Source: Rhodosorus marinus CCMP1338 (lineage: Eukaryota > Plantae > Rhodophyta). Taken from it: 64,000 nt of DNA. The stretch covers positions 1,240,001 to 1,304,000 of the forward strand of contig JAMWBK010000002.1 of NCBI GenBank assembly GCA_029953675.1, written 5' to 3'. A program made the position numbers and the translations under genes. Positions within the stretch are counted from its first letter, which is position 1; every line of letters starts with the position of its first letter. This document shows positions 5,536 to 64,000 of the stretch, one piece after another. The notes beneath the pieces were generated by a model that made no database searches, was not told the DNA's origin, and was given only the letters and a program-made list of their open reading frames with translations.

Positions 5536-6952
5536 TGATGGTTGGAACTAAGTGGTGTAGCGCCTCGCCGACGCAGACGTGCCAGAGCTGACAACGGCTT
5601 GTCAGCAGAAGTAGGTGCTCGGTTCATAAACCGATTTTTTTATTCATCATCTTACTAGAATGTGAAAGTCCCGGTTATGGAGTCCTTCTCCCGGGTCTGG
5701 GCGGCGAAGTAAGTGCAGTGCATGACCGAGCAAGCGCGGACTATCTACTATGTGATGGGTCAATGGAAAGTCCAGTTTTGTGTTTTTTGTTTAAGTTTTG
5801 GTTGGTTTTACTTTCTCAAACTCGGGATGAAGATGAGGAGTCCTTCCTCTTATATTTTAGCTGCCGAATCTTTCAAAAAGATGGGGCACGCAACTTTTGT
5901 CATAGTTACACTGACCGGTTTCCAAGACTGCGACGTTGCATACGATTTCCACTATCCTAAGCTATTGAGTTTATAGTTCCCTTTCACTTCTAACGCAGAT
6001 GTAGCTTGCGCGTAGGTACAATTGACTGACGTCAGCGTTGATGGAGAGAAGAGTCGACGAAATTGTCAAAGGGTGAATCGCAAGGTGGGTGTTTCGCCAT
6101 GCAAAATTTTGTTTTTGAGTTTCGAAATTGCCGCCCGTTTCGCGGAGATTTCGCGGCGGTTTTGTCGACTACTACGTGTGTTTTACTGCATGCATCGTGG
6201 AGGACTTCCTTATCCCATGTTCGGAAAGAGTTTACCCAGTGCTCATTCGACGAATCTCAAGTCCGCGATGCAGAACAAAGTTAGAGAGGGTTGGGCAGCA
6301 AGCCGGTGTTTTAGGGTCTCGAGCTTGTGAATCAATCAATGCTTTCACATATACTAATTTAGCTTGCAGTGCGCTGCGACCTAGCTGGTGCCCACGGGGT
6401 GATTGGCTTGCGCCTAGAGAACTTACTCTAACGTTTTTTGATTGTTTCGGCTGTGCAGATTTAAACGACAATGATTGGGACCATGGGTTCCACCGTTGAA
6501 GTCCACCAACTGGCGAACAATTGCCATTGAATTAGTTGCGAGAGATACATGAAACGGTCGCGCTGGGAAATTTTCCGTTCACAGTCGCGCAGGATGAGAA
6601 ACTAGTGGGATCAGCACGTCTTCTTTAATAAGTGAATACCGCACCAATTTGGTGGAGAAGTCTGATACCTAGAGCAGGTGTACATAGAGTCATCAATGAA
6701 GGAGTCTTAGCCCGCCTTATTAAGCGAAGACAAGGGCAAGCTCCCTCGCGGAGCTCATGAAGCTCACAGCTCGTTTAGTTTATCTTTGTGTTATGATGTA
6801 GACGTTCTCTTCGACTGTAGAAGAAGCCATGGCGGGAAGATTAAAACGAACGCGAATGGCGGTCTCGGTGACGATGTTGCCCAATGATTTGGCACTGTCC
6901 AACACAAGAGCAACCTTATAGACTTCAGAATCAACGTCGGGCGCTCGTTCTT

Positions 6953-7830
<878 letters not shown>

Positions 7831-9211
7831 TCACCGGAACAGAGCACAGGCCTCTTCGTCATCCAAAAGCAACTACGAAACGCTCCATGCAAACCAATTC
7901 TCAAACTTCCATCCTGTTAGTTACAACATTCTCATCTCGCACTCGTATCAAATGTCTCTACCTTTCGGTCTTATTCAAGAGGATCGCTCCACTCAGCCAG
8001 CCCCACCTGCCTCCTCTCCAGACACATCTCCATTTTAGCTGTTTGCCGTTTGTTGACACCACGTCACTAAAGCCCTCAGTAATCTCTAACACGTCAAAAC
8101 CCCTTCTCTTTCTTATTGAAAGAAATACTATTTAATAATTTCCCAAATTGGAATAATATTCGCCACTCATAGGCCGAGAACAGTTTCAACTTGCAATCTA
8201 TTTTCTCTGAAAAACAAATATTCTGAATCTGTTCGATTTTGCTAAAAATAGAATCGTTTCCTTTCTACATCATCAATCAAAAATGAATAAGAAAATGAAT
8301 TATTTAACGACGCGTGTCTCATACGTTCAAAATTGATTGACTGGTCTGAATCGGTGGTTTGGGAGTGTTGAATCCTTGAATATTGTTAAACATTTTACTG
8401 TCTCTTTGTGGAGGGGGTTACAGGACATGCAGAGCGTGTTCAGGGTGAGTTTGTCCCCTGACCGGAATCAGGTCCTTGCTGTGGGAGGCTAGTGGATCAG
8501 TAATGTCCGTTTCGACTACCCATCCTGTTTGACGGAGCGCTTTCGAGAGGTTGAGTTGTCGATGCTGATCTCTTGATGCTTTTCGGGAACGAGATCTGTT
8601 GTTGGACTTTTTAGTGGGATTTCTGGCATTTTGCTGGGATGAAAGGCCGCAGGTTCAAGGCAGACCCCAGAAGCGGTGCTCCGTTAAACAACATGTCAAC
8701 CCTCCCTCAGTTCACATCCAATCTGACCGTCAGTCTATGGTTAAACATCTTGCGGCGCCAATGTTATACAGCTCTCCCCTGAAACTGAACTGGGCAACTG
8801 TTCCGAAACTAAAGCACACTATATTGAACCATGCGCCACATGATACATTAACGTCAATAACTCCATATTTCAATGTGTTTCCAGTAGGAAACAAATGATA
8901 AAATATATAATTTTGCTCGTAAAACATAAATATTTTGTGCTAGTGTACAATTTTGTATTCTAAGTCTGGTGCATTTATTTAGGAACACATTTGCTACGGA
9001 TCCTTCTTCCGATGAGAACTCAGGTTCGATGGAGCTGCTTGTGCTCCCGGAGGTCTTATGGTGTGAGCGTTCTCTTGGGAAGTCGTCTCTATATGGGTTT
9101 GGTTAGCGCCCATGGATGGCTATTGGGTTGGCATCTGATTTGTTTCTTTGAGCAAGAAGACAAAAGGATTTGGAGGAGGAAATCGGTTGGGAAAGATTGA
9201 CGCCTTAAAAT

Positions 9212-9975
9212 ATGGCAATGACTGAAGAGGTTTTGGGAATCGTTGGTGGGCTGCTGGTTGGATTCCTGATCGGCCGGAGCAGAGGCGGAGGCGGAGCAGG
9301 AGGAGGTGGCTTTGACGGAGTGTTTTCTGAAGGGAGCGGATTGCGTGGAGAGTACAAGATCGTTCTCTGTGTGCGGACGGTATGGTTTTTCTTTCCAACA
9401 TGATTGGTGCAGTGTTGGCTTTGCCTCCGGCCTAATTGCTAGCTGATCGTTTCTTTTCCTGACACGCTGAATAATGGTAATTGAATTCGGCTAGGATTTG
9501 GGTATGAAGAAGGGAAAGATTGCGGCTCAATGTGGACACGCGACTTTGGGAGTATACAAGGAGGCTGTGAGGTTCAGGCCGAGAGAAGTGAATGCTTGGG
9601 AGGAGAATGCTCAACCAAAGATCGCGGTAAGTGGTGTGTCTCGTCAACATGACTTGATGTCGTTCTCCGCGATTAAGTACTTTGTTTCGGTTGTTTTCTT
9701 AATTGTAGCTTCAAATCAAGTCAATGAACGAAGCAAGAGGTCTTGAGAGAGCCGCGAGAAGCAGAGGAATTCCCACTTACATGGTTTATGATGCTGGTCG
9801 AACGCAAATATCAGCCGTAAGTGAAGCCGAGATGACCCTAATCTATCCTAGCTTGTTCAACCCGGCTTACTATATCGGTTCCGCTCGGTTGCAGGGAAGC
9901 ATGACTGTTCTTGCAATAGGACCAGCGCGGAAGGATGAGCTTGACGCTATTACTGGGAAGCTGAAGCTCCTTTAG
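9212..9975 (+). CDS. PTRH2: Peptidyl-tRNA hydrolase 2 (Pth2/Bit1 family), 4 exons
   Basis: N-terminal TM segment and Gly-rich linker, then VLCVRT|[36 protein letters not shown] and ITGKLKLL*. Confidence 0.95.
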
Positions 9976-33969: not shown

Positions 33970-35830
33970 AACAAAAACTGTTGATAGTTGCCTTGACGGC
34001 CTCTTGCCTAAAGATCAGGTGTGGCATTAGTTCTATCACGAGTAGCAACTTTGATGCATCTAAGTTCTGGACGCTCTCGCCACAAATATTTTTCTAAAGC
34101 GGTTAAAATGTTTTGTTCGTGGCATGTCTTTCACATTTTCCGCGTTTTGCTCAGAATTCGTACTCCTTATGATGTGGAGCACCGGTTCTACTGCTCCCGA
34201 CGAACACCCACCAATCTCTCCAAAGCTTCCCACCTGTCCCATTCTCCTCAAAATTGCCCAAAACCAAAAACAAAAAAAGTTCTCCAAAAAGAAGAAGAAA
34301 CTCCGCCAGATTTCAGTCCCTTGAAAAACATTTTATAAACGACAAAAATCGTTAGCTTCATTAACAAATCCTTCACAAATTTTATAACAAAATGTTTTCT
34401 TTTTTTTCCAAGTTACTTTGATTTCATTAATTTTGCTAACGCTGAGTCCCAAATGGTTGGATACTTTCATCCAGTAGCCATCTGTTTTCTAAATAATCCA
34501 ATTCTATTGGTTTTAAAAAAATATTATATATATATTTTTCATCATTTATAGCTCGATGACCTTCCCCTTTTACGACGTTCCCTTCTGATCCACTGTGATA
34601 ATTGGACGACGATCAATCGCATCGCTTGCACATGTAATCAAAAAGAGAGAATTTGGCTGGCTTGTTTTTTTGTAAGGAAAGGGTTTCTGCTATGAATTTT
34701 GCGCCGCATGTAACATTGGATCTCTCCAAAATAGGTTCGGTTGGCGGGAGAGAATTAATCATTTCATGGAATTCAGGGTTTTCTCAGGTGCACGGAGTTG
34801 TAAAAAGAAAAGAAAAAGAGGAAGTGGTCGAGAGGGGGGAGGGGGGGATAGTTTTGAACGACGTTGTACCGAAAACAAAGTCCACGACCCAGGCGTCTGT
34901 TTTGGAGGTTGAACAAAGTGTTTTTCATCTATAAGTAAAAAGTTTGCTCTACAATAACCTTCACCCAAAGTATGGATGGGGGGGTAATTTCTGATAAGAA
35001 TGTGGACAGTGAGGAAAACGGGAAGAACGGAGGGGGGGGAGGAACACGAGGAAAATGCATTAAAGATAATTATGAGTTAAAATATATATCATATTCTTCT
35101 GACTGACAAAGTGGAGAGAAAAGTAGTTAGTTTTATATTGATAAACTTTTGTTGAAGCGAGAAGCGAAAAAAGAGGAAAAAAATTTTAAAATTTTTTGTT
35201 GGGGGGATAGAGAGTGGGTCGTTGGCAGATTTTTTTTTTTTGCAAGAGGAACAACGAGAGCGGAGAGGGGTAGGGGTGGGAAATTGTGGTTTGGCACTCA
35301 GGTTGGAAATTGCGGATTGTGTACCCCGTCTCTTCACAATCTTGCGTAGAGCCAAAGAGTTTGTAAGGGGGTCTTATATTTTGATCACCCTGTACCTTCA
35401 TTTCGATCGATTTTTATGCACATTTCTTGCTTAGGAGAATATTCAAGTGAAAGCCTAGGCATGGATTGGTGAGCGAGTAAGTACGGCCCTGATCCAAAAT
35501 GGGGTTAAGGTGCGGTGAGGGTGTGTTTTTAATAGTGTCCAGGGGTTTTTGTAGGATTGAGGGTGGATCAGTAGTACTGAGCTGTCCCAGCAAATCCTCG
35601 TTTCATGTTTCGTGGCGTTCAACAAATCTACTACGGCCTTGGATATATAGATCATCTTCGCTTCAGCTATTTGCGAAGGAGGGCAGGGAGATGGGGTAAG
35701 GGCTGTTCGACTGAGGGCGTGGGAGACCGGTGTTTGTGTTTTTGTTGGAAGGGTTTTGTATCCTTCTGACTGCACATAGCGTGGAGAAGTTGTTTTGAAC
35801 ACGGTTCTCTGTGTAGCTCAGATCTCAATA

Positions 35831-38800
35831 ATGAAGTTGCTCTACGTGGTTGGAGCCCTGCTTGTGCTGGTGTTGAACAACGCACGCGGCCAGGTCATCG
35901 ATCGTGACAATATCTTGCATGAGCTTGTCATTGAGGGAGAAGGTTTCCGGTCGCCGTTGGATTTCGACTGGATCCCGGGAAATGTGGAGCGAATCATTAT
36001 CTGTGAGAAACGAGGACTTATTCACCTGGCAGTGAATGGAGTGCTACAGTCCAAGCCTTTCTTAGATATTCAGAATAAGGTTATGTCCGATTCTGGTAGA
36101 GGGCTGATGGCATGCCTCATTGATGTCGACTTCAAGAAGCAACCCTATCTTTATGTATCCTACACGGACAGTCGAATTTCAGACAACCCGAACGGCCCTC
36201 AAACTGGTATTGTATCTCGATTCAAGGTTAACGCGCAAATTACTGGGGCGAGCGGAGAGGTTGTTATAGCGGGAAAGTCAACGACTGGGAAGAACGGCTG
36301 CGGTGGAAAGGAGAGCATCGGAAAGAAGGACATTATTTGCAACGATGCGAACATGCACAATCATGGAGGGCTCACGATGAATCCCCAGGGCGAGCTGTTC
36401 GTTGGACTTGGAGATGGAGCTGACCCACCGGTTTTCGACGACCTGCCCATCCGTGCAGTGGACTTGGACTGGACAGTTGGCAAAGTCCTCTGCATTCAAC
36501 GAAATGGGAACGCGTGCAAGGGGAACCCGTTCCAGAAGGGCAACGATTTCAAATCTAACCGTGCTAAGGTGTGGAATTCGGGGCTCCGAAACCCGTTTAG
36601 GGTAAATTGGGATCCCGTCTTGAAGATACCGCTCATCGCACACGTTGGTTTCGCAAGTTTCGAGAGCATCTTCGCCGGCACTAAGGGTAAGAACTTCGGT
36701 TGGCCTTGCCTGGAGGGACCAAAGACAAATATCAAGGCGAACAAATACGATGAGTGTAAAGACATTGCCAAGGGAAAAACAAAGGCCGGCGGGGGTTCGC
36801 TCTGGGACTATGACCACGATTTGGGAACATCCGTTACGGGCGTTGCTCGCTTGAGTTCGAACAAATGGCCAAACTCTCTCAAGAACATGATCGCAGTGTG
36901 TGACTACACAAAGAGTTGGATCAAGCTCATTAAGACAAACAAGAATGGTATTCAAGGAAAGCCAGAGGATTTGATGTCTGATGTACTGGGACCAGTACAG
37001 CTGAAGCAGGGACCGGATGGTCATCTCTATTACATTTCAATCATTGCTCAGAAGATATTCCGGATCAGGTATCAGCTTGACAAGAGTAGACCAGTGGTTT
37101 CCAGAGTTTCTCCACCACAGAAGGCCACCAACGTAGAGACAACGGTCCGGGTTGGAATTACTTTCTCGAAGAAGATCAAAACCAACAGCATTAATGCCAA
37201 GAACATCAAACTTCAGCAGTCGAACAACAAGAAAGTCGTAAACGCAAAGCTAGACTGGGAGGCCGGGACGAACACCGTCTACGTGGAGCCTCGGAGCCCA
37301 TTGAACAAGAACGCGCCCTACGTGATTCTCGTCTCCGGAATTGTTGACACCCAAGGGAGAAAGATGAGAGGAAGTTTCAAATCGCCCTTCAAAACGGGAG
37401 AAGGATTTTCACTCTATATTTCTGATCTCAAGTTTCAGAAGGCTACCAACGGTATCAAAGCACCTGTGCTTCGGGACAAACAGCAGTTCCAACCAGCGCA
37501 GAACGTCATTCCACCATTGTCCCTTCGAGGAGAAACTTACCGCAAAGGTCTGGGCACTGTTGCCGAGTCAGTGGTTACGGTGAAGTTGCCCGCTGGCTGC
37601 AAGAGATTCCAATCCTATGTGGGAGTGGATGATTTCAGGAGAAACTTTGATTCTGGAGAAATGATCTTTACAGTCGAGGGAAAAGGTAAAAAGGGAACCG
37701 AAAGGCTCTACAGAAACAATGAGGTTGTTACAAAGACGGATCCAGCGCTTTACATTGACGTCGATGTTAGCGGGTTTGAGACGGTAAGCTTCATCTCGGG
37801 CAAGACGAAGAAGGGCGGAGCTGCGTCAGCTGTGGGAACTTGGGGGGATGCACAATTCCGGTGCGGATCGTACGATAAGGCCGAGCCGAAAGTTGTCAAG
37901 ATTACGCCCGCATCTAGTGTTGGAGTCAACCAGGAGATCATTGTCCTGTTCAGCGAGCCTATGGAGATTCAGAGTACTATTGAGGCAACGACGCTTCATC
38001 TTCCGGTCGAGAGCGGTGGTTATGGCTACGACCTTGGAGTGCAGATTGAATTCAATAACAAGCAAACTTTCATGACTGTCAAGCCGAGCATGCCGCTCAA
38101 CTTTGATACTGAGTACGTGCTAAGCATTGGCAAGGGTGCTACCGATCTTTCGGGAAATTCCCTGAAATCGAATACGGAAAAGAAGATCAGGACCAGAAAG
38201 GAGGGCACATCTGGGCAAAAGATCGGACTCACAGAGCTGAAAGCTAAGAATGTGAAACCTCCGAGGAACTTCTCGAAAGGAGCGAAAGATACTGTCGAAC
38301 TGCAACCGAATGTCGCTGTGGACTACCTTGTTCCTGGAAACTGTGGATCGTTCTCTTTCGATATGAGTGCTAAACAAGGTGGGCAAAACATGCGGCTGAG
38401 CGTGTCCGCGGACGGGAAGGTACTCTGCGGGTCTGGCCCTGTTAACGCAGGCCAGACCAAGAGGGTTAAGTGCGACGTACTTGGCCAAAACGACGTCACT
38501 CTTAGGCTAACGGGGAACGGAGGCGTTGCAGTTTTATCCAACGCTGAGTTCAACTGCGCGCAAGGTGCGAGGCTGCCCAGATGTGAATTCGGGAAGTTGC
38601 CGAACAAGTTTGTTGTTGGGCAGAGGATTTGCTACAGTGCGACGTGCTACGACTTCAAGGGAAACCAGATTCCTAAGAACAAGATGCTCTTCCTTACGCA
38701 GCTTGTCCATTGCCAGAAGGACTGCCACTTCCACGAGGAGCAAACTGTTGAGAATGCAACGGGTGGATGCTACAAGGCTCCTGATCATGGGGACTATTAC

Positions 38801-39112
38801 TACCTTGAATTTCAAGTCTTCGCCGACGACGGTAAGAATACAGGCATGGCAGCGCGTCAAGTTCGACCGGAAACTGCCGCTGTTACTGTGACCACGATGC
38901 CACCAGGTGCTGTGGTTGGAGTAGATTCCTTATCTGGCCCATCTCCGCTGAGGTCCATTGTTTTAGTCAAAGCAAGGTTCACAATCAATGCGTCGAAGCG
39001 GTCGGGTAACAGACAATTCAAATTTTGGGATGACAACAAGAAGCAGCCGGCGGACCGTGAGTTGTTGTTCAACAAACCTGGGCCGAGAAAATACAACGCT
39101 GTGTACAAGTAA
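35831..39112 (+). CDS. Secreted multidomain PQQ-dependent sugar dehydrogenase-like protein (GSDH propeller, Big_5, NPCBM, Big_5, degenerate NPCBM, C-terminal beta domains), 1093 aa, intronless
   Basis: Signal peptide MKLLYVVGALLVLVLNNARG. GSDH motifs HNHGG, LFVGLGDG, SGLRNPFR, NFGWPCLEG, GPDGHLYY. Big_5 motifs PVVSRVSP..ITFSK and PKVVKITP..FSEPM..TDLSGNSL. NPCBM motifs YISDL..GETYRKGLGT..FQSYVGVDD..WGDAQF. Confidence 0.9.
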   Translation: MKLLYVVGALLVLVLNNARGQVIDRDNILHELVIEGEGFRSPLDFDWIPGNVERIIICEKRGLIHLAVNGVLQSKPFLDIQNKVMSDSGRGLMACLIDVDFKKQPYLYVSYTDSRISDNPNGPQTGIVSRFKVNAQITGASGEVVIAGKSTTGKNGCGGKESIGKKDIICNDANMHNHGGLTMNPQGELFVGLGDGADPPVFDDLPIRAVDLDWTVGKVLCIQRNGNACKGNPFQKGNDFKSNRAKVWNSGLRNPFRVNWDPVLKIPLIAHVGFASFESIFAGTKGKNFGWPCLEGPKTNIKANKYDECKDIAKGKTKAGGGSLWDYDHDLGTSVTGVARLSSNKWPNSLKNMIAVCDYTKSWIKLIKTNKNGIQGKPEDLMSDVLGPVQLKQGPDGHLYYISIIAQKIFRIRYQLDKSRPVVSRVSPPQKATNVETTVRVGITFSKKIKTNSINAKNIKLQQSNNKKVVNAKLDWEAGTNTVYVEPRSPLNKNAPYVILVSGIVDTQGRKMRGSFKSPFKTGEGFSLYISDLKFQKATNGIKAPVLRDKQQFQPAQNVIPPLSLRGETYRKGLGTVAESVVTVKLPAGCKRFQSYVGVDDFRRNFDSGEMIFTVEGKGKKGTERLYRNNEVVTKTDPALYIDVDVSGFETVSFISGKTKKGGAASAVGTWGDAQFRCGSYDKAEPKVVKITPASSVGVNQEIIVLFSEPMEIQSTIEATTLHLPVESGGYGYDLGVQIEFNNKQTFMTVKPSMPLNFDTEYVLSIGKGATDLSGNSLKSNTEKKIRTRKEGTSGQKIGLTELKAKNVKPPRNFSKGAKDTVELQPNVAVDYLVPGNCGSFSFDMSAKQGGQNMRLSVSADGKVLCGSGPVNAGQTKRVKCDVLGQNDVTLRLTGNGGVAVLSNAEFNCAQGARLPRCEFGKLPNKFVVGQRICYSATCYDFKGNQIPKNKMLFLTQLVHCQKDCHFHEEQTVENATGGCYKAPDHGDYYYLEFQVFADDGKNTGMAARQVRPETAAVTVTTMPPGAVVGVDSLSGPSPLRSIVLVKARFTINASKRSGNRQFKFWDDNKKQPADRELLFNKPGPRKYNAVYK

Positions 39113-49423: not shown

Positions 49424-52272
49424 GCTGTACCCACTCCACCCACCCCCCCTCGTCAAGACCTTTCAACAGCTCGTTTTCTTCTCGACACCACCCGCACAAT
49501 CCCTACATTCTCACCCGCCAAACGCACACCCACCCCCGACCCTCTACAGCCCAAACGCTATACGACCTCCACTCTCTTGTCACTCACATATACTCCCACT
49601 CCCCCTCCCCAACCACCCTCCCTTCCCCATCCAACCATCGAACTTCTGCGTGAAGCTTTTCTCTGATCAACAGCCTTATCAATGGTATATTGTGATACGC
49701 ACTAAAATGCGGCCCCCTTCTATTTCCCACATTTCCCATCCACTTCACAACTACCTCACAAAAAAATCCCTAGTTGCCAAATACATTCTATCCCCCTCTT
49801 ATCAAAACCTAAAATCTCTTCGTTTCCAGGAATAGATTCCACCCCATTTAACCATATAAACAATATACATACTATTATTTCTATATAAGAAATATAATAC
49901 ATAATTTTAATATCCAATAAATGGTTAAGTAGGGTTCACCTATTTACCGTTGGAAACTACAACCACAGCATTACTATTTCAAGGGTTGACCCCCCTTTTA
50001 GTATTGCACACAACCCCCTCACCATGTTGCCCAATAGTCAACAAGCCTCTAAAAAATCCCTTAGCTCTCGCTTCTTATGTTTTTTCTTTTAAAAATCAAA
50101 AACTTATATGTTTCGAATGTATCCGAATGGACTGAAATTTCAGCCCAGTGAAGATTCTTTCTTTTCAAAAAGTTTGCATTTTTTTTATTGGCACACCGGG
50201 ATCAGGAGTGGTGGGAGGGTGGATGAAGAAAGAAGGGGGCGGGGGGGGAAGGGAATGAGGTTGAACAATTCAGGTGCGGATACAAAAAAAGGCTCTGATG
50301 GGGCGTCACAGTACGGATTGACAGAATTTGACAGGGGAGGTGGTCTTCAACTAAAGCGCACAGCTTCCTCACACCCCATCTCGTTCTTTCCGCAACGGTT
50401 TTTGCTCTTATCTAAAAATATTCCTCTCTGGTGCAATCAAGTCTCCCTAGAAAGCAATCTATTGGAGGATCGAGGATTGAAGTAAAATAATAATTAAAAT
50501 AAATAATTCACGGGAGAGTATTGGAGATGAGGGAGTTGCAAGGAAGCTTGAGGACTTCACCTCTGACGCAGGTCGCGAGAATAAGATAGCGTATTGAATC
50601 CTGGAAAGTCTGTATTTTGAAATAAAATGCCGTCATTCCAAGAGACTTGAAAGTCTTTGCGTCAGGTTTTTATGAGATGAGTTTGTGGCATAGCGGGATA
50701 ACCCCATCCAGGACTGGTGGTGGAGATCTCAAACGAAAAAGTTATCTGGAGGGTATCATCCCTGTAAACATTGTCTCATATGTTGTTTAACTGTAAAAAC
50801 GAAGAAAAAGCTACGATACTGATCAAATAGGGAAAAAGATAACTTTTTGCTGGGGGGAATATTTATGGAAATAATCTTGTTCGGTTCGTTTGTACATCCC
50901 CCCATATTCATTTCTTGCTGTTGATAGCCTTACACTTCTATCTTACCCATCCCCCCCCATGCAAAGAGCAGAGCTTGGCGTGAAAGCTAATCCATGAAAT
51001 CAATTTTGTGTGAGACTTTTTTCGTGAACGATTACCGGCCTTCTATTTGAAATTCCGCTGAAGAGCATATCATAATATGGGGCTAGCTCCACAGAAAAAC
51101 TTCAACGTTTATTCGCAAAACTCAAATTGAGCGTATCTGCTGACGGACATGCATCATGGATTACAGCCATGAGATATCGCGGTATACGAATGGCATGCTT
51201 TGAGAATTACCCAATGATATTCACCCACAACCTTGATCAGAGATATTCTATTCAATTAGCGTATACCAAGTGTCCCCTTCGACTGATCTATATGTAGGAC
51301 TCTGGTGGAAACTTACCAATCTACAATTTAAGTTTTGTTTTTCTGGATGTTATCTACTTGGCCTCCATTGGTAGAATATATTCGAATACAGCTATAATTT
51401 TAGATATATTTGATATCATTGGTAGAAATGTACCTGATGCGTTAAATATTATTTCCTCAGGAAGAGTACTTTTCAGGCCCATGTCCAATTAGCGCCTTTT
51501 TTATGAAAGAGATTAATCCGTCGGTTATTAATAGGAGTTGACTTACCCGCCACGCGTCCTAAGTATCCAATTAATCTCTTCTAAAAACCTCTTCTCCAAC
51601 CAAATTCTCTTCAGTATTTTCGTCGTGTTTTCATCAGAATTAAGATCACCTTTCACAAGAGAAAGTTGTTGGCTTTTCGGCATTTCAAAAAAATTACAAA
51701 TTCCGTTAAGCAGATCGGACCGCACCCTGCTTAAAGAATGTTGTGGAGTATTGAATGGAAGCTGAGAAACTGATGTATTCTAAGCGGACCGCTCAAGGAT
51801 CTATTTTGGGAATCATGCGTGCTAATGCGAATGATTTTGAAAAACCGCATTGTCGGCTGAACCGTTATACAACGGTACACTTGAAGATGACGGCGGGAAA
51901 GTGCCAGCAATTTGCTTGTAGCCAATATGGCATCCCCTGGATACTGCAGCAGAAATTGCGACATTTTCACAATTCGTTTTTCAAGAATTCTTGAGCATTT
52001 CTTTATGGGGACAGTACGGCCCATGATGACTCTCTTGCGCGTGAACCATCAGGGAGAGATGGGAGGATGGTGTCAGTGATAGATCAGTGGTGCACACTGA
52101 TCAGAATCACTTCATGATGACCGTCCCTATGATCAAATGAGGACATCAATGGAATATGGGTTTGTGCTTGTGCTCTCAATGACACCATAGCTAAGAAAGG
52201 CTTGCAGAGGAGTATGTATGTTTTTGACATGTTGACCATCCATACTCATTGTTGCTGCCATCCGGTACAAAT

Positions 52273-59666: not shown

Positions 59667-60402
59667 CTCCCTATCCCCCATTTAATTTCGGACACCCCTA
59701 GCTTCGGGCGGAGCGATTCGAAACGAACTCGCTCCAGAGGTTTTGTAAAAATGTCGGCTACCGTTCCCGGCGTACCGAGGTAATGCAACTTAACCTCTCC
59801 GCGGACGCACATCGTTCCTTCGAATAGTGTAGCTTCACAGATACACGTCTCGACATCTCGTTGCTTGTACCTTCTGCCCAAGATATGCAGGAGTTGTTGT
59901 CCGAATAGGCTAACATGGGTTTCTCGACGTTTCTGCCCAACTCTGCCAGAAGTTCTTGCAACCACCGTTGCATCGACATCATGTCCCCCAGAGCCTGATA
60001 CTCTGCCTCTGTGGTTGATTGGGCAACCGAACGTTGCCGCCATGACCTGTAGCTCACCGCAGAACCATTCAGAGTTACCAGTATCCCAGTGGTGCTCCGT
60101 TTGCTCTCCTGATCAGCCGCCTCAACCCAAATCGATACCCGATTATCTGGTACATGCGATCAGATTCTGATATGTTACCAGATTCCGAAATATCCCCGGA
60201 CATTAGGAGTGGTTAAGTGGTTAGGTGTCCGCAGGTAACGGACGACTCTTTCCGCCTGTTCGTAATCACCTGCCCTGTAACTACTCATCTTACTCGCCAG
60301 CTGTCCCACAGGCAATGTCCGGGAGGGTTCTCGTGCTAATGTAGGGCAGATAACCCACGAGCGCTGGTAAGGTAAATCCGTCATCAGGTTCCCTGTAACC
60401 GT

Positions 60403-62642
60403 AAGCTTTACTGGGCAGCTGCCTACTGCAGCGTAACACTACTTCTATCGCTATCTAGGGGAATGCTTGCTCCAACCCCGCTACCGGGGTCTCATGCTAC
60501 GTTCTAAAGAAAAAACAGGCACCAGTGGATTCTCCAACTGGTCTACGCGCAAAGCGCCTAGCGCTATCTCCGCATTACCTCGCCAAAGTTGCCGGTTTAT
60601 CTGCGACCTGATATCGCTCAGTTCTAGGCTCCGGTGCAACAAATGTTTGCAGCTGTCCCGCAGAAACTCCTGTGCCATCGGTCCAGTCCGCCCAAATGTT
60701 TCTATTGCAATTGGGATGAACTTGTCATCCGGGTGTTCTATCGTCATCGCCTCCTTGTAGTGCGCTTTCTTCTACCTCTCTGCACATCTTGCTGCATATC
60801 CACTCTCCTCCTGACTACGCCTCAGATACTTCCCTTGCAAAGTAGGCACAACCGTCACGTCCAGCGCATACCGTTGAAATGTCCTCGGATGCGTAGCAAT
60901 GATGTCTGGTCGTAGCCCGTAATTTTCAAAGTACTTCTCTGGCTCCTGCTCGATGTCCACAAAGTTCCACCGGTTCAGCCACCTTGCGATCTCCGTGCAT
61001 ATCTCGTCATGCCTACGTTGCCACAGCCCAGTCGACGTGGGGCAATGATGAAAGCGTTGTACTCCATTTGCTCCGTATTTACCACGGCATCGAGTGTATT
61101 TTTCCGTAGTTCGCAGCCCTGGAATCGGTAGCCCCAGTAGTTGTCGGATACCTGCATTTCGATCGAGCTCAGCTTTTTCGGCTCCAACGTCGGCAGTTCG
61201 CGCGGCCAGACTCCCGATCCAGAGCCCGCCGCCGACCTGATTCGAGCGCGATGTTCGCCAGAGATGCGCGGATTGTTAACCAGGCGTTGGAATGCTGAAT
61301 GGTGTGCCTCCCGAGAGAGAGTTTGTTGTGTAGAACCATTATTCCAATCGCCACAGTCTTCTGGAGCGTCTGCTGGGGGGTTTTCCCTTGTCTGCTGCAC
61401 GGTGGCCAGTCTTCTGATCCGCGGCGGAGTTTCGGGCCGCAGCCTGCCTTGTATCGCTCGAGCCGATGATTGTATCTGCTCTGCAAGGTGTTCTGTGGAC
61501 CATTGTAGTCGTGTCGCGGTGTTCGTAGCCGGATTTCTGTCTGTACAAACCTGCCTCTGCAGCTCAGCAATGTAAGGCCAGTCGCCTGTATTGCTTCGAA
61601 AGGTATTTGTCCAAGCCGAGTAGTAAGCAATAGGCTGGATACGCCGTCGAGTAGCGAACCCCAATCCCCCCCACCGGCAAGGCAGCGCAGTCTGTTCCCA
61701 GATGTGCCCCAGGAGCTCCTCGTCCTCCATGCCAGAGGTAGCGAGGCCTCCGAGCAAGGTTTCCCGATTATATCTCATCATGGTGTCCGCCTCCCGTGCC
61801 AGACTGCGGCCGAACGGGTAGGCTAGGCATCGTAGCAGGTAATCTAGCCGCGTTTCCGCGCAGCACCTGAACAATGCGACCTGCGTTAAGTTCATGTTGC
61901 GGTAGCTGTGCTATTTCCTTGATGAGCTTTTCGTGCTTATTTTGAAGCGCACGGCACTCGTGCTCGATATATTCCCGGTTTCCTATCGGGATCGAATGGA
62001 TAGTCACGCCTTCTGGGGTGACATGTATGCCAGGTATCTCGCGATTGATGACTCGCGCCGTCGTCAAGGCTCGACCGTAGAGCGTGCATTTGTTGAGTTG
62101 TAGGCGGGCCCCTAGAGATGGGAGCATAGTTCGGCTCCAGGCTAGTGCTTGCTTCAGTTCCTGCAGCGGTCCCACGATCGTAATACCGTCATGGATAGCG
62201 ACAATCGTTAGATCCGAGAACTTTGTTCGTAGAGCTTTTAGGAACGGTGCAAGTGCTAGTGCATGTAGCACTGGCCCAAGAGGGTCTCCCTGTTGTACTC
62301 CCGTAGCTGCTTGGAGTGTCAGTCGTGAGTGTTCCGTTTGATTCTCTCCAGGTGTAGAGCGCCAGCCGCAAAGCGTCGGCGAGTCCACTGCGTCGCTTCC
62401 ATACCCAAGTCTGTAAACCGCCGCAAGCTCCGGAAAGTGCTGGTCCACGAGTTTCTTGGCGAGGCGTCGATCAATCCTGTTGAATGCATTCTCGAGGTCA
62501 AGCCTAAGCACCACCGCGTCTGGTTCACATGACAGATGGGCCTGGATCTCGTGAAGTGAGCGCACGCTCCTGGTGCCTTTACAACTAGGGATCGGAGTCA
62601 GTGGCGGATGCGAACGCTCACTTCACGCGATCCAGGCCCACC
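60403..62642 (-). mobile_element. 5'-truncated CRE-clade non-LTR retrotransposon (RT plus restriction-like endonuclease) nested in the Copia RT
   Basis: RT: LDLENAFN, GVQQGDPLGP, IHDG (decayed xxDD), LQLNKC, ALPCRWGGLG. Degenerate CCHC (YTRC..FHHC). RLE: RRHDEI, LRPDI, ALDVTV, FIPIAIETFGR. Candidate 7-bp TSD TAACCGT (60396-60402) / TAACGGT (62643-62649). Confidence 0.88.
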
Positions 62643-64000
62643 TAACGGTCTCTGCGCGCTCCTTGGTCGCTGGTGTGTTAAATTTCCGGCATCCAGACAT
62701 GGCATAGGAGTGAATTACCTCCAGAAAGTACGCGGTCTCGTTGAGGTAGACAAGTTTCCTCGGCCTATCCCTCACTATCTTGACGTCCAAGAATTCATCC
62801 ACCTCACCAAGGACCTTCATTTCATACAGTTCGTTGAGCACCATCTTCGCAACCGCTATGTCAGCTTTCCTACCGATAACCAACAGATCGTCCACGTAGA
62901 CAGCGACGATCGTAAGGTTCCGCCTGAAAACGCATCCGTCAGACCTCGTAGGCTCGAACCCATGGTTCGTGAGGTCGTGGGACCTTCGCTCTGGAGTCGG
63001 AACCCTTTAGCATGAAAAGTCCTCACCGAAAGTAGACTATAAGATAAATCAGGAATGTCATAAACGTCCTTCAGTACTAGATCCGCGCCTGAGCGTAAGG
63101 GGAAGATAATATCTCCCTTCCCAACGGCGGGACTTGACAAGTTGTTCCCGAAGTATATTGGGGTCAGTTCGATTTCCTTGTAAACGTGGAAATATCTCCG
63201 CTGGTTACAAACGTGGTCGGTGCAGCCGCTGTCGACCAAGAAGTTACTCTCGACAGGGCGAAGTTGCTTTCGCACCAAACTCGCTGCAACAAACTTCCCT
63301 GAGGGTACTCCCTCTTGAAGTGTCCCTCCTGCACCTCCAGCAGGGTCGGCCTCTCCCTAACCTGTGCCGTCAAGGCCCTCGTCTTCCGGGGCTTGTCTCT
63401 CGGCCTGCTTTCGAGCCCAATCACCCTCGAATAGCTCTCCAGCTCCCTCACAGTGTTCCCCCACCTGAGTGGATTCGAGGGTCGCCAATGAAGGTAGATG
63501 AACTCCTGGAAGGATTGCGATCCTTCCAAGGCGCTCCTCAGAATACGCTGCGTTTCATCACCTCTGGGCTCCTCTCGGGTAATCGCCGTGATCTCCGCGA
63601 ACTCATCCTCGAAGTAGTGAATGAGATCGCTCACGGACACCCCTAGCCGTAGGCGTCTGTGGTTAAGCCTCGTCCAGACGGCATCGGCAGATTCCCCCTT
63701 CCTGGAATCGTACCGATCCAGGAGGCTCAGCCAACACCGCCTGGGGTCCAGTTGCGCCCTCCCCATCGCAACGTCAAGCGCTGGGGCCTGCAGCGTGGAT
63801 GAGAGGACCGCCATTACAAACCTGGCTTCATCTCTCTGAATAAACGGATCATCAACCTGGCCCCCGTTGAGTTAATGCTCCTCATTCCCCGCGATGACAC
63901 CGGTGTAGCCGTGGAAGTTCAGGTACGCGAGCATCTGAACTTCCATCGGCCGAACGCCGACCTGTTCCCTTCTCTTCCGGAGAAGGGTTCAGGCATCCTC

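Follow-up and report, generated by a model that had tools for sequence, protein, structure and literature searches.

The open reading frame at positions 35831-39112 is, with high confidence, a genuine and transcribed nuclear gene with a single exon in the red alga Rhodosorus marinus CCMP1338. It belongs, with the same confidence, to a family of at least ten copies that is confined among eukaryotes to the Stylonematophyceae and goes back to a bacterial modular gene transferred once, long ago, the transfer being followed by duplication and by adoption of the host composition. Its function can be proposed more tentatively: the single most likely option, which we place somewhat below an even chance, is a secreted sGDH-like carbohydrate oxidoreductase, tethered by a CBM51-type module and using a quinone cofactor. 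Taken whole, this explanation blends a well-supported origin with an uncertain mechanism and is, in our judgement, evenly balanced between right and wrong.

The gene and its locus

Reading-frame translation of the window, i.e. the whole stretch of 64,000 nucleotides that was analysed, gives at 35831-39112 (+) a single unbroken ORF of 1093 aa plus stop. The frame is open from an upstream TTG at 35795 to 39112 (+), its first ATG being at 35831, and the ORF is by far the longest of the window (1093 aa vs 371 aa for the next one). At ~48% GC, chance would practically never leave 1093 successive codons without a stop. In the R. marinus genome, 24,821 introns are spread over 8392 genes (PMC10250338), the host average being ~3 introns per gene, and the flanking genes (Urb2, CDC73 and an ABC transporter) are eukaryotic and intron-containing, with gene models longer than their coding sequences (the 442 aa of CDC73 extend over 2029 bp, the 654 aa of the ABC transporter over 2269 bp). 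The intronless 3.3-kb ORF described in an earlier note on this DNA is hence borne out, as one frame of 1093 codons among intron-containing neighbours.

The absence of introns and the bacterial nature of the nearest non-algal relatives would also be expected if the gene were bacterial contamination or part of a chimeric assembly. Nevertheless, it sits well inside a 3.48-Mb contig of a long-read assembly, with Urb2 and CDC73 on either side, and since these neighbours are intron-containing eukaryotic genes on a long-read contig, contamination, which the earlier note had raised as a concern, is excluded. Base composition and codon usage are moreover those of the host (GC 0.50, GC3 0.58, RSCU r=0.62 vs neighbouring exons), the GC of the bacterial homologues being 0.61-0.67. 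A transcript of MMETSP0011 is 92% identical to the gene and paralogue transcripts are present as well, in independent MMETSP strains, while the paralogues are at least ten and spread over 5 contigs. With this evidence, we consider a non-algal source to have a negligible probability.

Indeed, at least ten loci on at least five contigs of R. marinus encode paralogues, which show 43-58% identity (same-genome members P0002, P0004, P0005, P0008, P0010, P0125, P0268, P0271 and the fragment P0131). Four loci were read from end to end (the 35831-39112 gene, P0002, P0005 and P0008) and all are uninterrupted ORFs, and the P0010 locus, annotated with an intron in the record, is one continuous 1102-aa ORF. 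The earlier note has to be corrected on two points in light of these results: the gene is not a lone, single recent acquisition but one of at least ten copies in an old family with fully ameliorated composition, and it represents a gene family and not a multi-component system.

Domain architecture

The protein consists, in this order, of a signal peptide, a GSDH propeller, a Big_5 domain, an NPCBM/CBM51 module, a second Big_5 domain, a weak second NPCBM and a 189-aa C-terminal block. The features are as follows.

35831..35890, +, signal peptide (aa 1-20, MKLLYVVGALLVLVLNNARG; predicted cleavage before Q21), read from the sequence, with equivalent hydrophobic N-termini in paralogues
35891..37075, +, six-bladed GSDH-type beta-propeller (aa 21-415), by Pfam PF07995, AF2, Foldseek and residue conservation
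37076..37405, +, Big_5 Ig-like domain 1 (aa 416-525), Pfam PF13205, 57 bits, match aa 417-522
37406..37870, +, NPCBM/CBM51-type carbohydrate-binding module 1 (aa 526-680), Pfam PF08305, 97.5 bits, match aa 528-676
37871..38200, +, Big_5 Ig-like domain 2 (aa 681-790), Pfam PF13205, 50 bits, match about aa 682-782
38201..38542, +, degenerate second NPCBM-like module (aa 791-904), Pfam PF08305, 24.5 bits, marginal
38543..38869, +, first Ig-like domain of the C-terminal block, with a putative metal site, by alignment and AF2
38870..39109, +, second Ig-like domain of the C-terminal block, InlB-B-repeat-like, by alignment and AF2 model
39110..39112, +, stop codon, by reading-frame translation

Read by eye, the N-terminus MKLLYVVGALLVLVLNNARG followed by Q looks like a signal peptide, with an n/h/c pattern and with positions -3/-1 occupied by small residues, and from this predicted signal peptide we infer that the protein is secreted. 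The Pfam GSDH match (PF07995) covers aa 40-402 and scores 91-95 bits against a cut-off of 25. The AF2 model of the propeller is six-bladed (pLDDT 91.7, pTM 0.93) and its top Foldseek hits are all of sGDH/Asd type, with 7cdy, 2g8s, 3a9g and 1c9u matched at E-values of 1e-20 to 1e-22 and TM(target) of 0.81-0.86. NPCBM module 1 finds 2vng (CPE0329, E=1e-4) and 7js4 (E=2e-5) by sequence in the PDB. The second NPCBM match, at aa 824-898, reaches 24.5 bits vs a cut-off of 23.9 and covers profile positions 44-122 of 137 only; the module is kept among paralogues. The architecture proposed earlier hence stands, with GSDH, the two Big_5 domains and two NPCBM modules, the second NPCBM being partial and marginal.

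Origin of the gene family

In a neighbour-joining (distance-based, not maximum likelihood) tree of GSDH-domain sequences, the algal sequences form one clade with a bootstrap of 199/200, or 200/200 when segments of Asd, 2ISM and sGDH, extracted from HMMER alignments, serve as outgroups. This clade is nested among 192 bacterial sequences, and bacteria are monophyletic to the exclusion of algae in 0/200 replicates. With a midpoint root the tree was split along the long stem of the algae, and outgroup rooting was used instead. The single algal clade nested in a bacterial family therefore supports one old transfer from bacteria to algae, followed by expansion. The best bacterial identities, 33-36%, are scattered over several phyla, and the NJ tree singled out no donor lineage, the architecture being closest in Acidobacteriota but the nearest GSDH-domain neighbours differing.

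Among the top hits, mostly without taxon label, from 1.84 billion cluster representatives (50% identity), eukaryotic members are found only in Rhodosorus and Bangiopsis (P0123), together with one contig without taxon label. These hits show no broad vertical distribution across eukaryotes, and the horizontal origin suggested in the earlier note is supported, with Stylonematophyceae as the only eukaryotes and as one clade within bacterial diversity. Vertical descent from an ancestral eukaryotic GSDH/HHIP-like gene, lost almost everywhere else, is very improbable: GSDH-fold proteins do occur in animals (HHIP), plants, brown algae and fungi, but the HHIP match (E=6e-4) is far weaker than those of bacterial proteins (E down to 1e-122), the full multi-domain architecture including the His-cluster block is shared with bacteria only, and the algal clade sits inside bacterial sequences.

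The bacterial family is very large: a search at E<1e-3 gave 14,635 hits, and the species genomes of GTDB contain at least 593 loci, from many phyla. Acidobacteriota and metagenomic proteins carry a GSDH-(Big_5/NPCBM)n-block arrangement, partly collinear with the algal protein (query residues 38-781); the bacterial domain mix named in the earlier note is hence found again, mainly in Acidobacteriota. The transferred gene very probably combined a GSDH-type propeller, Big_5/NPCBM modules and the His-cluster Ig block already. After transfer it was duplicated over at least five contigs and took on the host base composition, with no introns gained in the four fully read loci.

The propeller active site and the question of PQQ

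The propeller residues conserved over 18 algal and 192 bacterial sequences are H176, R253-N254-P255-F256-R257, V272-G273, E278, W291-P292-C293, E295 and D358-Y359. H176 falls on the His of the motifs HFGGR (2g8s) and HNGGR (3a9g) and is the equivalent of sGDH His144, the general base (for the roles of His144, Arg228, Asn229 and Gly247, see PMC6881810); all 18 algal sequences have it, as do 191/192 of the bacterial ones. The pair R253-N254, part of GLRNPFR, is matched in the alignment by GHRNPQG and GIRNPQG and corresponds to sGDH Arg228/Asn229, which contact the quinone oxygens of PQQ; it is nearly invariant in the 210 sequences. G273, equivalent to sGDH Gly247, is invariant and is followed by Phe (Trp in bacteria) vs Pro248 in sGDH, where this loop provides the catalytic Ca2+ with carbonyls of the main chain.

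By alignment to the R-I-R strand of Asd, which we provisionally take to be sGDH Arg406/Arg408, the equivalents of these two residues are Gly387 and Val389 in the algal protein; that of sGDH Lys377 is Thr360. The bacterial clade shows the same substitutions, its consensus being Ala/Gly, Gly and Val. A PDB search for sGDH Arg406/408 with the last propeller blades returned only insignificant matches to virginiamycin B lyase blades, and the sGDH-type NCBIfam model TIGR03606 (non_repeat_PQQ) scores 26 bits vs a cut-off of 434.55. Alternative basic residues are present in the propeller (K60, R90, R130, R208 and R257) and are candidates for lining the pocket.

The use of PQQ suggested in the earlier note, in its strictest form, would be that of a canonical PQQ/Ca2+-dependent soluble aldose (glucose/galactose) dehydrogenase of sGDH/Asd type, binding bacterial PQQ in the standard way. 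The Pfam GSDH score above threshold, the PQQ sugar dehydrogenases as best structural matches and the conserved equivalents of His144, Arg228, Asn229 and Gly247 agree with it, yet the replacement of all three PQQ carboxylate ligands by Thr, Gly and Val, RNPFR in place of RNPQG and the TIGR03606 score make it a distinctly improbable reading. What stands of the PQQ inference, a weak one, is the catalytic His and the Arg-Asn pair; the carboxylate ligands Lys377, Arg406 and Arg408 do not. Furthermore, since HHIP, which is not a PQQ user, also keeps the catalytic His (PMC4133262), conservation of this residue is weak evidence for PQQ. Eukaryotes are not known to make PQQ, as the earlier note states; eukaryotic enzymes that use it are already known, namely fungal AA12 (PMC4133262), which binds PQQ without several canonical ligands (PMC4133262, PMC6881789). 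PQQ dependence of the algal protein is a proposal.

A propeller that processes or binds carbohydrate without any cofactor, either as a Ca2+-dependent lyase/hydrolase or as a lectin-like glycan binder like HHIP, and that trims or organises extracellular polysaccharide, is somewhat unlikely but has several observations on its side. The HHIP propeller binds glycosaminoglycans, and Foldseek significantly matches structures of HHIP, some of them with heparin bound; the canonical carboxylate ligands are missing; none of 268 homologues has a redox partner domain; and 3/5 bacterial loci examined lie in Wzy/Wzz/glycosyltransferase polysaccharide-synthesis clusters, Wzy-type clusters being a typical place of polymer-processing enzymes. 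On the other hand, the sGDH-type His/Arg-Asn constellation is nearly invariant, the likeness to PQQ enzymes (TM 0.81-0.86) exceeds that to HHIP (about 0.6), and there is no similarity to known polysaccharide lyase families.

The C-terminal block

The 189-aa block models in AF2 as two Ig-like domains and has no match in Pfam or NCBIfam. The first domain (pLDDT 92.4) holds H960, a C961...C965 disulfide loop, H966, H968, D985 and H986, so the motifs quoted in the earlier note are present as H960-C-QKD-C-H966-F-H968 and P984-D985-H986-GDYYYLE. H960, H966, H968, D985 and H986 are invariant in an alignment of 21 algal and bacterial sequences, while the Cys-Cys spacing is variable and both Cys are missing from one homologue. 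Against the PDB, Foldseek returned for this domain generic Ig, pilin and FnIII matches only (TM<=0.43). In the second domain F1063, W1066 and D1068 are invariant, and the homologue P0121, from Logan run SRR22824290, has a weak Flg_new_2 (PF18998) match at this position. The invariant four-His/Asp cluster probably binds a metal, at what is a putative site; this metal may be structural or may serve an electron relay, the relay being speculation. Two other assignments were rejected: CX3CH in HCQKDCH as a c-type haem motif (Cys spacing of 3 to 7, one homologue without both Cys) and a Cu/Zn-SOD-like fold (no SOD in the top 50 Foldseek hits). Neither CxxCH nor a cytochrome partner domain was found in any of 268 homologues.

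Local phmmer and profile searches show the block to be widespread and common to the algal protein and bacterial GSDH homologues, in agreement with the earlier description of it as typical of bacterial GSDH proteins; in the first search, 37/110 bacterial matches carried the His-cluster Ig domain. The profile matches of the block are mostly short fragments, and a word-indexed search with the block alone returned nothing, missing even the 92%-identical orthologue, which is an artefact of the method and not absence. Two apparent stand-alone copies on long contigs were inspected. The first (L090) follows a 204-aa GSDH fragment in a long-read metagenome assembly and was rejected as stand-alone; the second (L091) has no GSDH gene among its called neighbours, with nothing but short ORFs upstream. 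Because L090 looks like a frameshift-broken GSDH gene and L091 is an ambiguous case, there is no firm evidence of the block occurring independently of GSDH.

Proposed function

In the mechanism that we tentatively prefer, the CBM51-type NPCBM module or modules would tether the secreted protein to galactose-containing extracellular polysaccharide, where the propeller would act as an sGDH-like carbohydrate oxidoreductase. His176 would be the general base acting on the sugar hydroxyl, and a quinone cofactor would have its carbonyls polarised by Arg253 and Asn254; this cofactor would most plausibly be PQQ obtained from associated bacteria. As the carboxylate-binding Lys/Arg/Arg are absent, PQQ binding would have to be non-canonical, as in fungal AA12.

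A purely structural matrix or adhesion protein, with a catalytically dead propeller and only the CBM and Ig modules mattering, would account for the multi-Ig, multi-CBM architecture, for a family expansion of the kind expected of cell-surface proteins and for the FG-GAP, PA14 and Calx-beta modules of bacterial relatives. We find it improbable, given that the putative active-site residues are conserved across paralogues of 43-58% identity and across bacteria, a conservation which argues for selection on a pocket. Similarly improbable, and a bolder reading, is that the propeller, together with the Ig domain of the four-His/Asp cluster, makes up an extracellular redox unit complete in itself. Such a unit would be a polysaccharide oxidoreductase of a new class, dependent on quinone and metal and without cytochrome partner, which would modify exopolysaccharide in bacteria and would have been captured and expanded by stylonematophycean algae for remodelling of galactan-rich mucilage. 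If so, the alga would depend on PQQ made only by associated bacteria.

An old bacterial multi-domain gene thus resides in a red-algal nuclear genome, intron-free in the fully read copies and in ~10 copies, and this intron-free persistence and expansion suggest an adaptive role at the cell surface or in mucilage. Should PQQ be used, a eukaryote would for a second, independent time be seen to rely on a cofactor that it cannot make. Moreover, as the bacterial clade is annotated 'PQQ-dependent sugar dehydrogenase' without the canonical carboxylate ligands, the chemistry of one member would re-annotate thousands.

Comparison with known systems

Searches of the literature found no characterised member of the clade, and no paper on the family or on NPCBM together with sorbosone dehydrogenase. 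The uncharacterised bacterial 'PQQ-dependent sugar dehydrogenase' proteins with PKD/NPCBM/Big_5 and the block, from Acidobacteriota, Chloroflexota, Myxococcota, Actinomycetota and others, share with the algal protein the propeller clade (NFGWPCxEG), the C-terminal block, the module types and partly their order. They differ in sequence (30-35% identity), are often larger (FG-GAP, PA14, PKD) and in some cases lie in polysaccharide-synthesis clusters.

The soluble PQQ sugar dehydrogenases (A. calcoaceticus sGDH, 1C9U/1CQ1; E. coli Asd/YliI, 2G8S; P. aerophilum 3A9G; 7CDY) have the six-bladed propeller in common with the algal protein (TM up to 0.86), and their catalytic His, Arg-Asn pair and Ca2+-loop Gly align with it. 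However, identity is 16-19%, and the algal protein lacks the Lys/Arg/Arg carboxylate ligands, has RNPFR for RNPQG and an extra conserved WPC.EG motif, is multi-domain, CBM-bearing and by prediction secreted, and falls far under the TIGR03606 cut-off.

CBM51 (NPCBM) modules bind galactose and blood-group A/B glycans. Compared with those of Clostridium perfringens GH95/GH98, algal NPCBM module 1, which strongly matches the Pfam family and finds 2VNG, is joined to a propeller instead of a glycoside hydrolase, and its second copy is degenerate. The HHIP propeller is of the same fold family, a significant match and, like the algal protein, without canonical PQQ carboxylate ligands; it is a weaker match than the PQQ enzymes and belongs to a signalling receptor with EGF domains, of unrelated architecture.

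Fungal AA12 enzymes (CcPDH, TrAA12) are, like the algal protein, eukaryotic and secreted and combine a six-bladed PQQ-type propeller with carbohydrate-binding domains. They use exogenous PQQ through a non-canonical ligand set (PMC4133262, PMC6881789), and the algal parallel is a proposal. Their structural match is much weaker (TrAA12, Foldseek TM about 0.57, E=1e-10), the algal protein has no AA8 cytochrome domain, and lineage and origin differ. Among the CcPDH PQQ ligands R273, H363, R430, N431, H539, H560, W563, N564 and R621, three of nine (H363, R430 and N431) have clear algal equivalents.

Gene structure and domain organisation

On the forward strand, an open reading frame at 35795..39112 has its first ATG at 35831 and runs from there for 1093 codons plus a stop (ORF listing), which makes it threefold longer than any other ORF in the 64-kb window. 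We assign this gene to a clade of GSDH propellers, captured by red algae, that has so far not been characterised and that bears a His-cluster domain without a previous description. The uninterrupted frame and the domains described in the earlier note were both confirmed, Pfam recognising GSDH, Big_5 and NPCBM. The N-terminus, MKLLYVVGALLVLVLNNARG up to a boundary before Q, reads as a predicted signal peptide, and the protein (35831-39112, +) is organised as follows:

Residues 40-402: GSDH propeller (Pfam, 91-95 bits)
Residues 417-522: Big_5, first copy (Pfam, 57 bits)
Residues 528-676: NPCBM module 1 (Pfam, 97.5 bits)
Residues about 682-782: Big_5, second copy (Pfam, 50 bits)
Residues 824-898: NPCBM module 2, partial and marginal (Pfam, 24.5 bits; cut-off 23.9)
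Last 189 residues: C-terminal block (zero Pfam matches even at E<=10)

Among solved structures, NPCBM module 1 matches 7js4 and the CBM51 from CPE0329 of C. perfringens (2vng, E=1e-4). Modules of the CBM51 family have galactose or blood-group A/B glycans as ligands. A 248-aa antisense ORF (36278-37024, -) lies wholly within the GSDH coding region; we regard it as a shadow ORF that arose by chance.

Genomic setting

The window belongs to JAMWBK010000002.1, a 3.48-Mb contig of GCA_029953675.1, the long-read nuclear assembly of R. marinus CCMP1338, which is 31.2 Mb in size and has 8392 genes with 24,821 introns (PMC10250338). The models flanking the gene encode Urb2, a CGL160-like protein, CDC73 and an ABC transporter, and each spans more genomic DNA than its CDS and therefore has introns. 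Exons of a gamma-tubulin complex protein, a RING protein and a reverse transcriptase are found elsewhere in the window. In composition the gene (GC 0.50, GC3 0.58) matches its neighbouring exons (GC 0.50-0.53, GC3 0.44-0.64; r=0.62 for RSCU), the GC of the bacterial homologues being 0.61-0.67. Furthermore, MMETSP0011, from a different R. marinus strain, contains a transcript 92% identical to the gene. Given the contig placement, the intron-bearing flanks, the host-like composition and codon usage and this transcript, contamination or a chimeric assembly, against which the earlier note had asked for a check, is excluded for practical purposes.

Of the 2-kb bins, GC is lowest in 50001-52000 (0.41) and next lowest in 34001-36000 (0.42), which is intergenic or promoter sequence ahead of the gene. 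GC rises to 0.54-0.55 at 60001-64000, compared with about 0.48 across the window, and this GC-richer stretch holds an ORF with a reverse transcriptase domain (RVT_1, E=1.5e-8; 61768-62565, -), probably a retroelement.

The algal gene family

By tblastn the window contains one copy of the family. Full-length relatives with 43-58% identity are present elsewhere in the same genome, on contig 1 (NDN08_005580, 005582 and 005564), contig 4 (NDN08_002108, 002109 and 002138), contig 8 (NDN08_006430) and a 2.2-Mb contig (NDN08_004412). Beyond the window, the chromosome-scale contig JAMWBK010000002.1 also carries NDN08_007382 (P0131). This fragment of 351 aa consists of propeller alone, shares 50% identity with residues 7-348 and groups with NDN08_004412 at 90%-identity clustering; it may represent a pseudogene or a duplicate that was cut short.

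In the paralogues P0002, P0005 and P0008 the CDS length equals the gene span, hence these genes are single-exon. P0010 (NDN08_002138) is a continuous ORF of 1102 aa at 5923-9231 of locus L005 (contig JAMWBK010000004.1); its deposited model has 1028 aa, a downstream start and a 144-bp intron. Such an intron would cost the conserved C-terminal block about 50 residues, and it is probably an artefact of the gene model.

Outside Rhodosorus, a homologue (P0123) is present in Bangiopsis sp. CCMP1999, also a stylonematophyte. P0121, a protein of 1258 aa with the same architecture, is encoded on a 7.2-kb Logan contig (L007, SRR22824290) and groups with P0123. Its gene has a GC of 0.61 on a contig of GC 0.54 where other sizeable ORFs are absent, and its source is probably a further stylonematophyte or a related alga.

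Bacterial relatives

An exhaustive HMMER search matched 14,635 proteins at E<1e-3, of which 604 also pass E<1e-30. The top non-algal matches are metagenomic proteins with the modules of the algal protein: P0124 is collinear with residues 38-781, P0129 reads GSDH-Big_5-NPCBM-block-NPCBM-Big_5-NPCBM and P0132 GSDH-NPCBM-Big_5-NPCBM-block. Scanning GTDB species genomes for NFGWPCxEG, a signature of the clade, gave at least 593 loci, with identity of at most 35%, in Chloroflexota, Acidobacteriota, Myxococcota, Actinomycetota, Planctomycetota and further phyla. Carriers of a homologue that can be cultured include Archangium gephyra, Pyxidicoccus fallax and a Luteitalea strain. The NPCBM/Big_5/block architecture is seen in Bryobacterales, Luteitalea and other Acidobacteriota, and the bacterial character that the earlier note had ascribed to the domain mix thus holds.

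Where the neighbours of bacterial NPCBM/Big_5/block genes were examined, three of five genes are located within polysaccharide-synthesis clusters with Wzy, Wzz, glycosyltransferase, epimerase and flippase genes (L006, a 79-kb ENA contig; L009, a JGI contig; L030, a Luteitalea sp. MAG); the other two (L021 and L038) lie outside such clusters. The polysaccharide setting suggests a role of the bacterial homologues in exopolysaccharide processing.

The C-terminal block

The block, too, proved to be bacterial in character as previously proposed: it is borne by 37 of the 110 bacterial matches of the first search, usually downstream of a PKD domain, and by most bacterial proteins of the NPCBM type. 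Neither Pfam nor NCBIfam covers its algal or bacterial copies, and block-only database fragments are annotated "hypothetical protein" with no Pfam domain. On the ENA long-read metagenome contig L090 (4456-6669) a bacterial GSDH-PKD-block gene appears to be split into separate short ORFs, probably by frameshift errors of the long-read assembly; splitting of this kind can yield spurious "stand-alone" blocks in protein databases. For a second seemingly stand-alone block, L091, a GSDH gene was not found nearby.

H960, H966, H968, D985 and H986 are invariant in 21 aligned algal and bacterial blocks, as are P1013, G1026, F1063, W1066 and D1068. C961 and C965 border a loop of variable length, and one homologue lacks both cysteines; for these reasons a haem motif was rejected and the pair is predicted to be a disulfide. 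The AF2 fold consists of two tandem Ig-like sandwiches (pLDDT 92.4), with only generic pilin and FnIII structures as PDB matches (TM<=0.43). Since the His/Asp positions fall on the disulfide-stapled hairpin and the following loop, their clustering suggests a putative metal site.

Phylogeny and gene transfer

NJ trees were built from 210 aligned GSDH domains (350 columns), 18 of them algal. Without an outgroup the 18 algal sequences form a single clade in 199 of 200 bootstraps; its sole unlabelled member, P0174, joins R. marinus transcripts at 90%-identity clustering. With Asd, TTHA0570 (2ISM) and sGDH segments from the HMMER output added as outgroups, algal monophyly reaches 200/200, 24 successive bacterial-containing clades enclose the algal clade, and bacteria are monophyletic to the exclusion of algae in 0/200. 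The nesting and the taxonomic distribution support one bacteria-to-alga transfer that would predate the Rhodosorus/Bangiopsis split, followed by duplication, in distance-based trees that resolve no donor lineage. Horizontal acquisition, which the earlier note proposed, is supported; a single recent acquisition is not, the family being instead old, expanded and ameliorated.

The propeller and its relation to PQQ enzymes

The AF2 model of residues 21-415 (pLDDT 91.7, pTM 0.93) has the PQQ sugar dehydrogenase structures 7cdy, 2g8s, 3a9g and 1c9u as closest matches (E 1e-20 to 1e-22, TM(target) 0.81-0.86), followed by HHIP (about 0.6) and then TrAA12 (about 0.57). Work on sGDH assigns the role of general base to His144 and places Arg228 and Asn229 on either side of the PQQ carbonyls. 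The ligands of the catalytic Ca2+ include Gly247 and Pro248, and the PQQ carboxylates are held by Lys377 and C-terminal arginines, Arg408 included (PMC6881810; PMC6881789).

The proposal of a possible PQQ enzyme finds only partial support. H176, R253-N254 and G273 align with the general base, the Arg-Asn pair and the Ca2+-loop glycine, and are essentially invariant in the 18 algal and 192 bacterial sequences. The carboxylate ligands, however, are replaced: T360 stands at the position of sGDH Lys377, and the Asd strand R-I-R-D-V corresponds to G387-P-V389-Q-L. T360 and G387/V389-type substitutions typify the entire bacterial clade too, and the NCBIfam sGDH-type model scores 26 bits, missing its cut-off of 434.55 bits. 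K60, R90, R130, R208 and R257 are invariant basic residues specific to the clade, and a cytochrome/CxxCH domain occurs in 0 of 268 homologues.

AA12 enzymes bind PQQ although several canonical ligands are missing (PMC4133262); missing ligands are therefore no proof against PQQ. Candidate PQQ-type redox chemistry is the likeliest single option for the propeller, unproven and in our estimate somewhat short of an even chance. As the AA12 family already provides eukaryotic PQQ enzymes, PQQ use in an alga, if true, would not be unprecedented.
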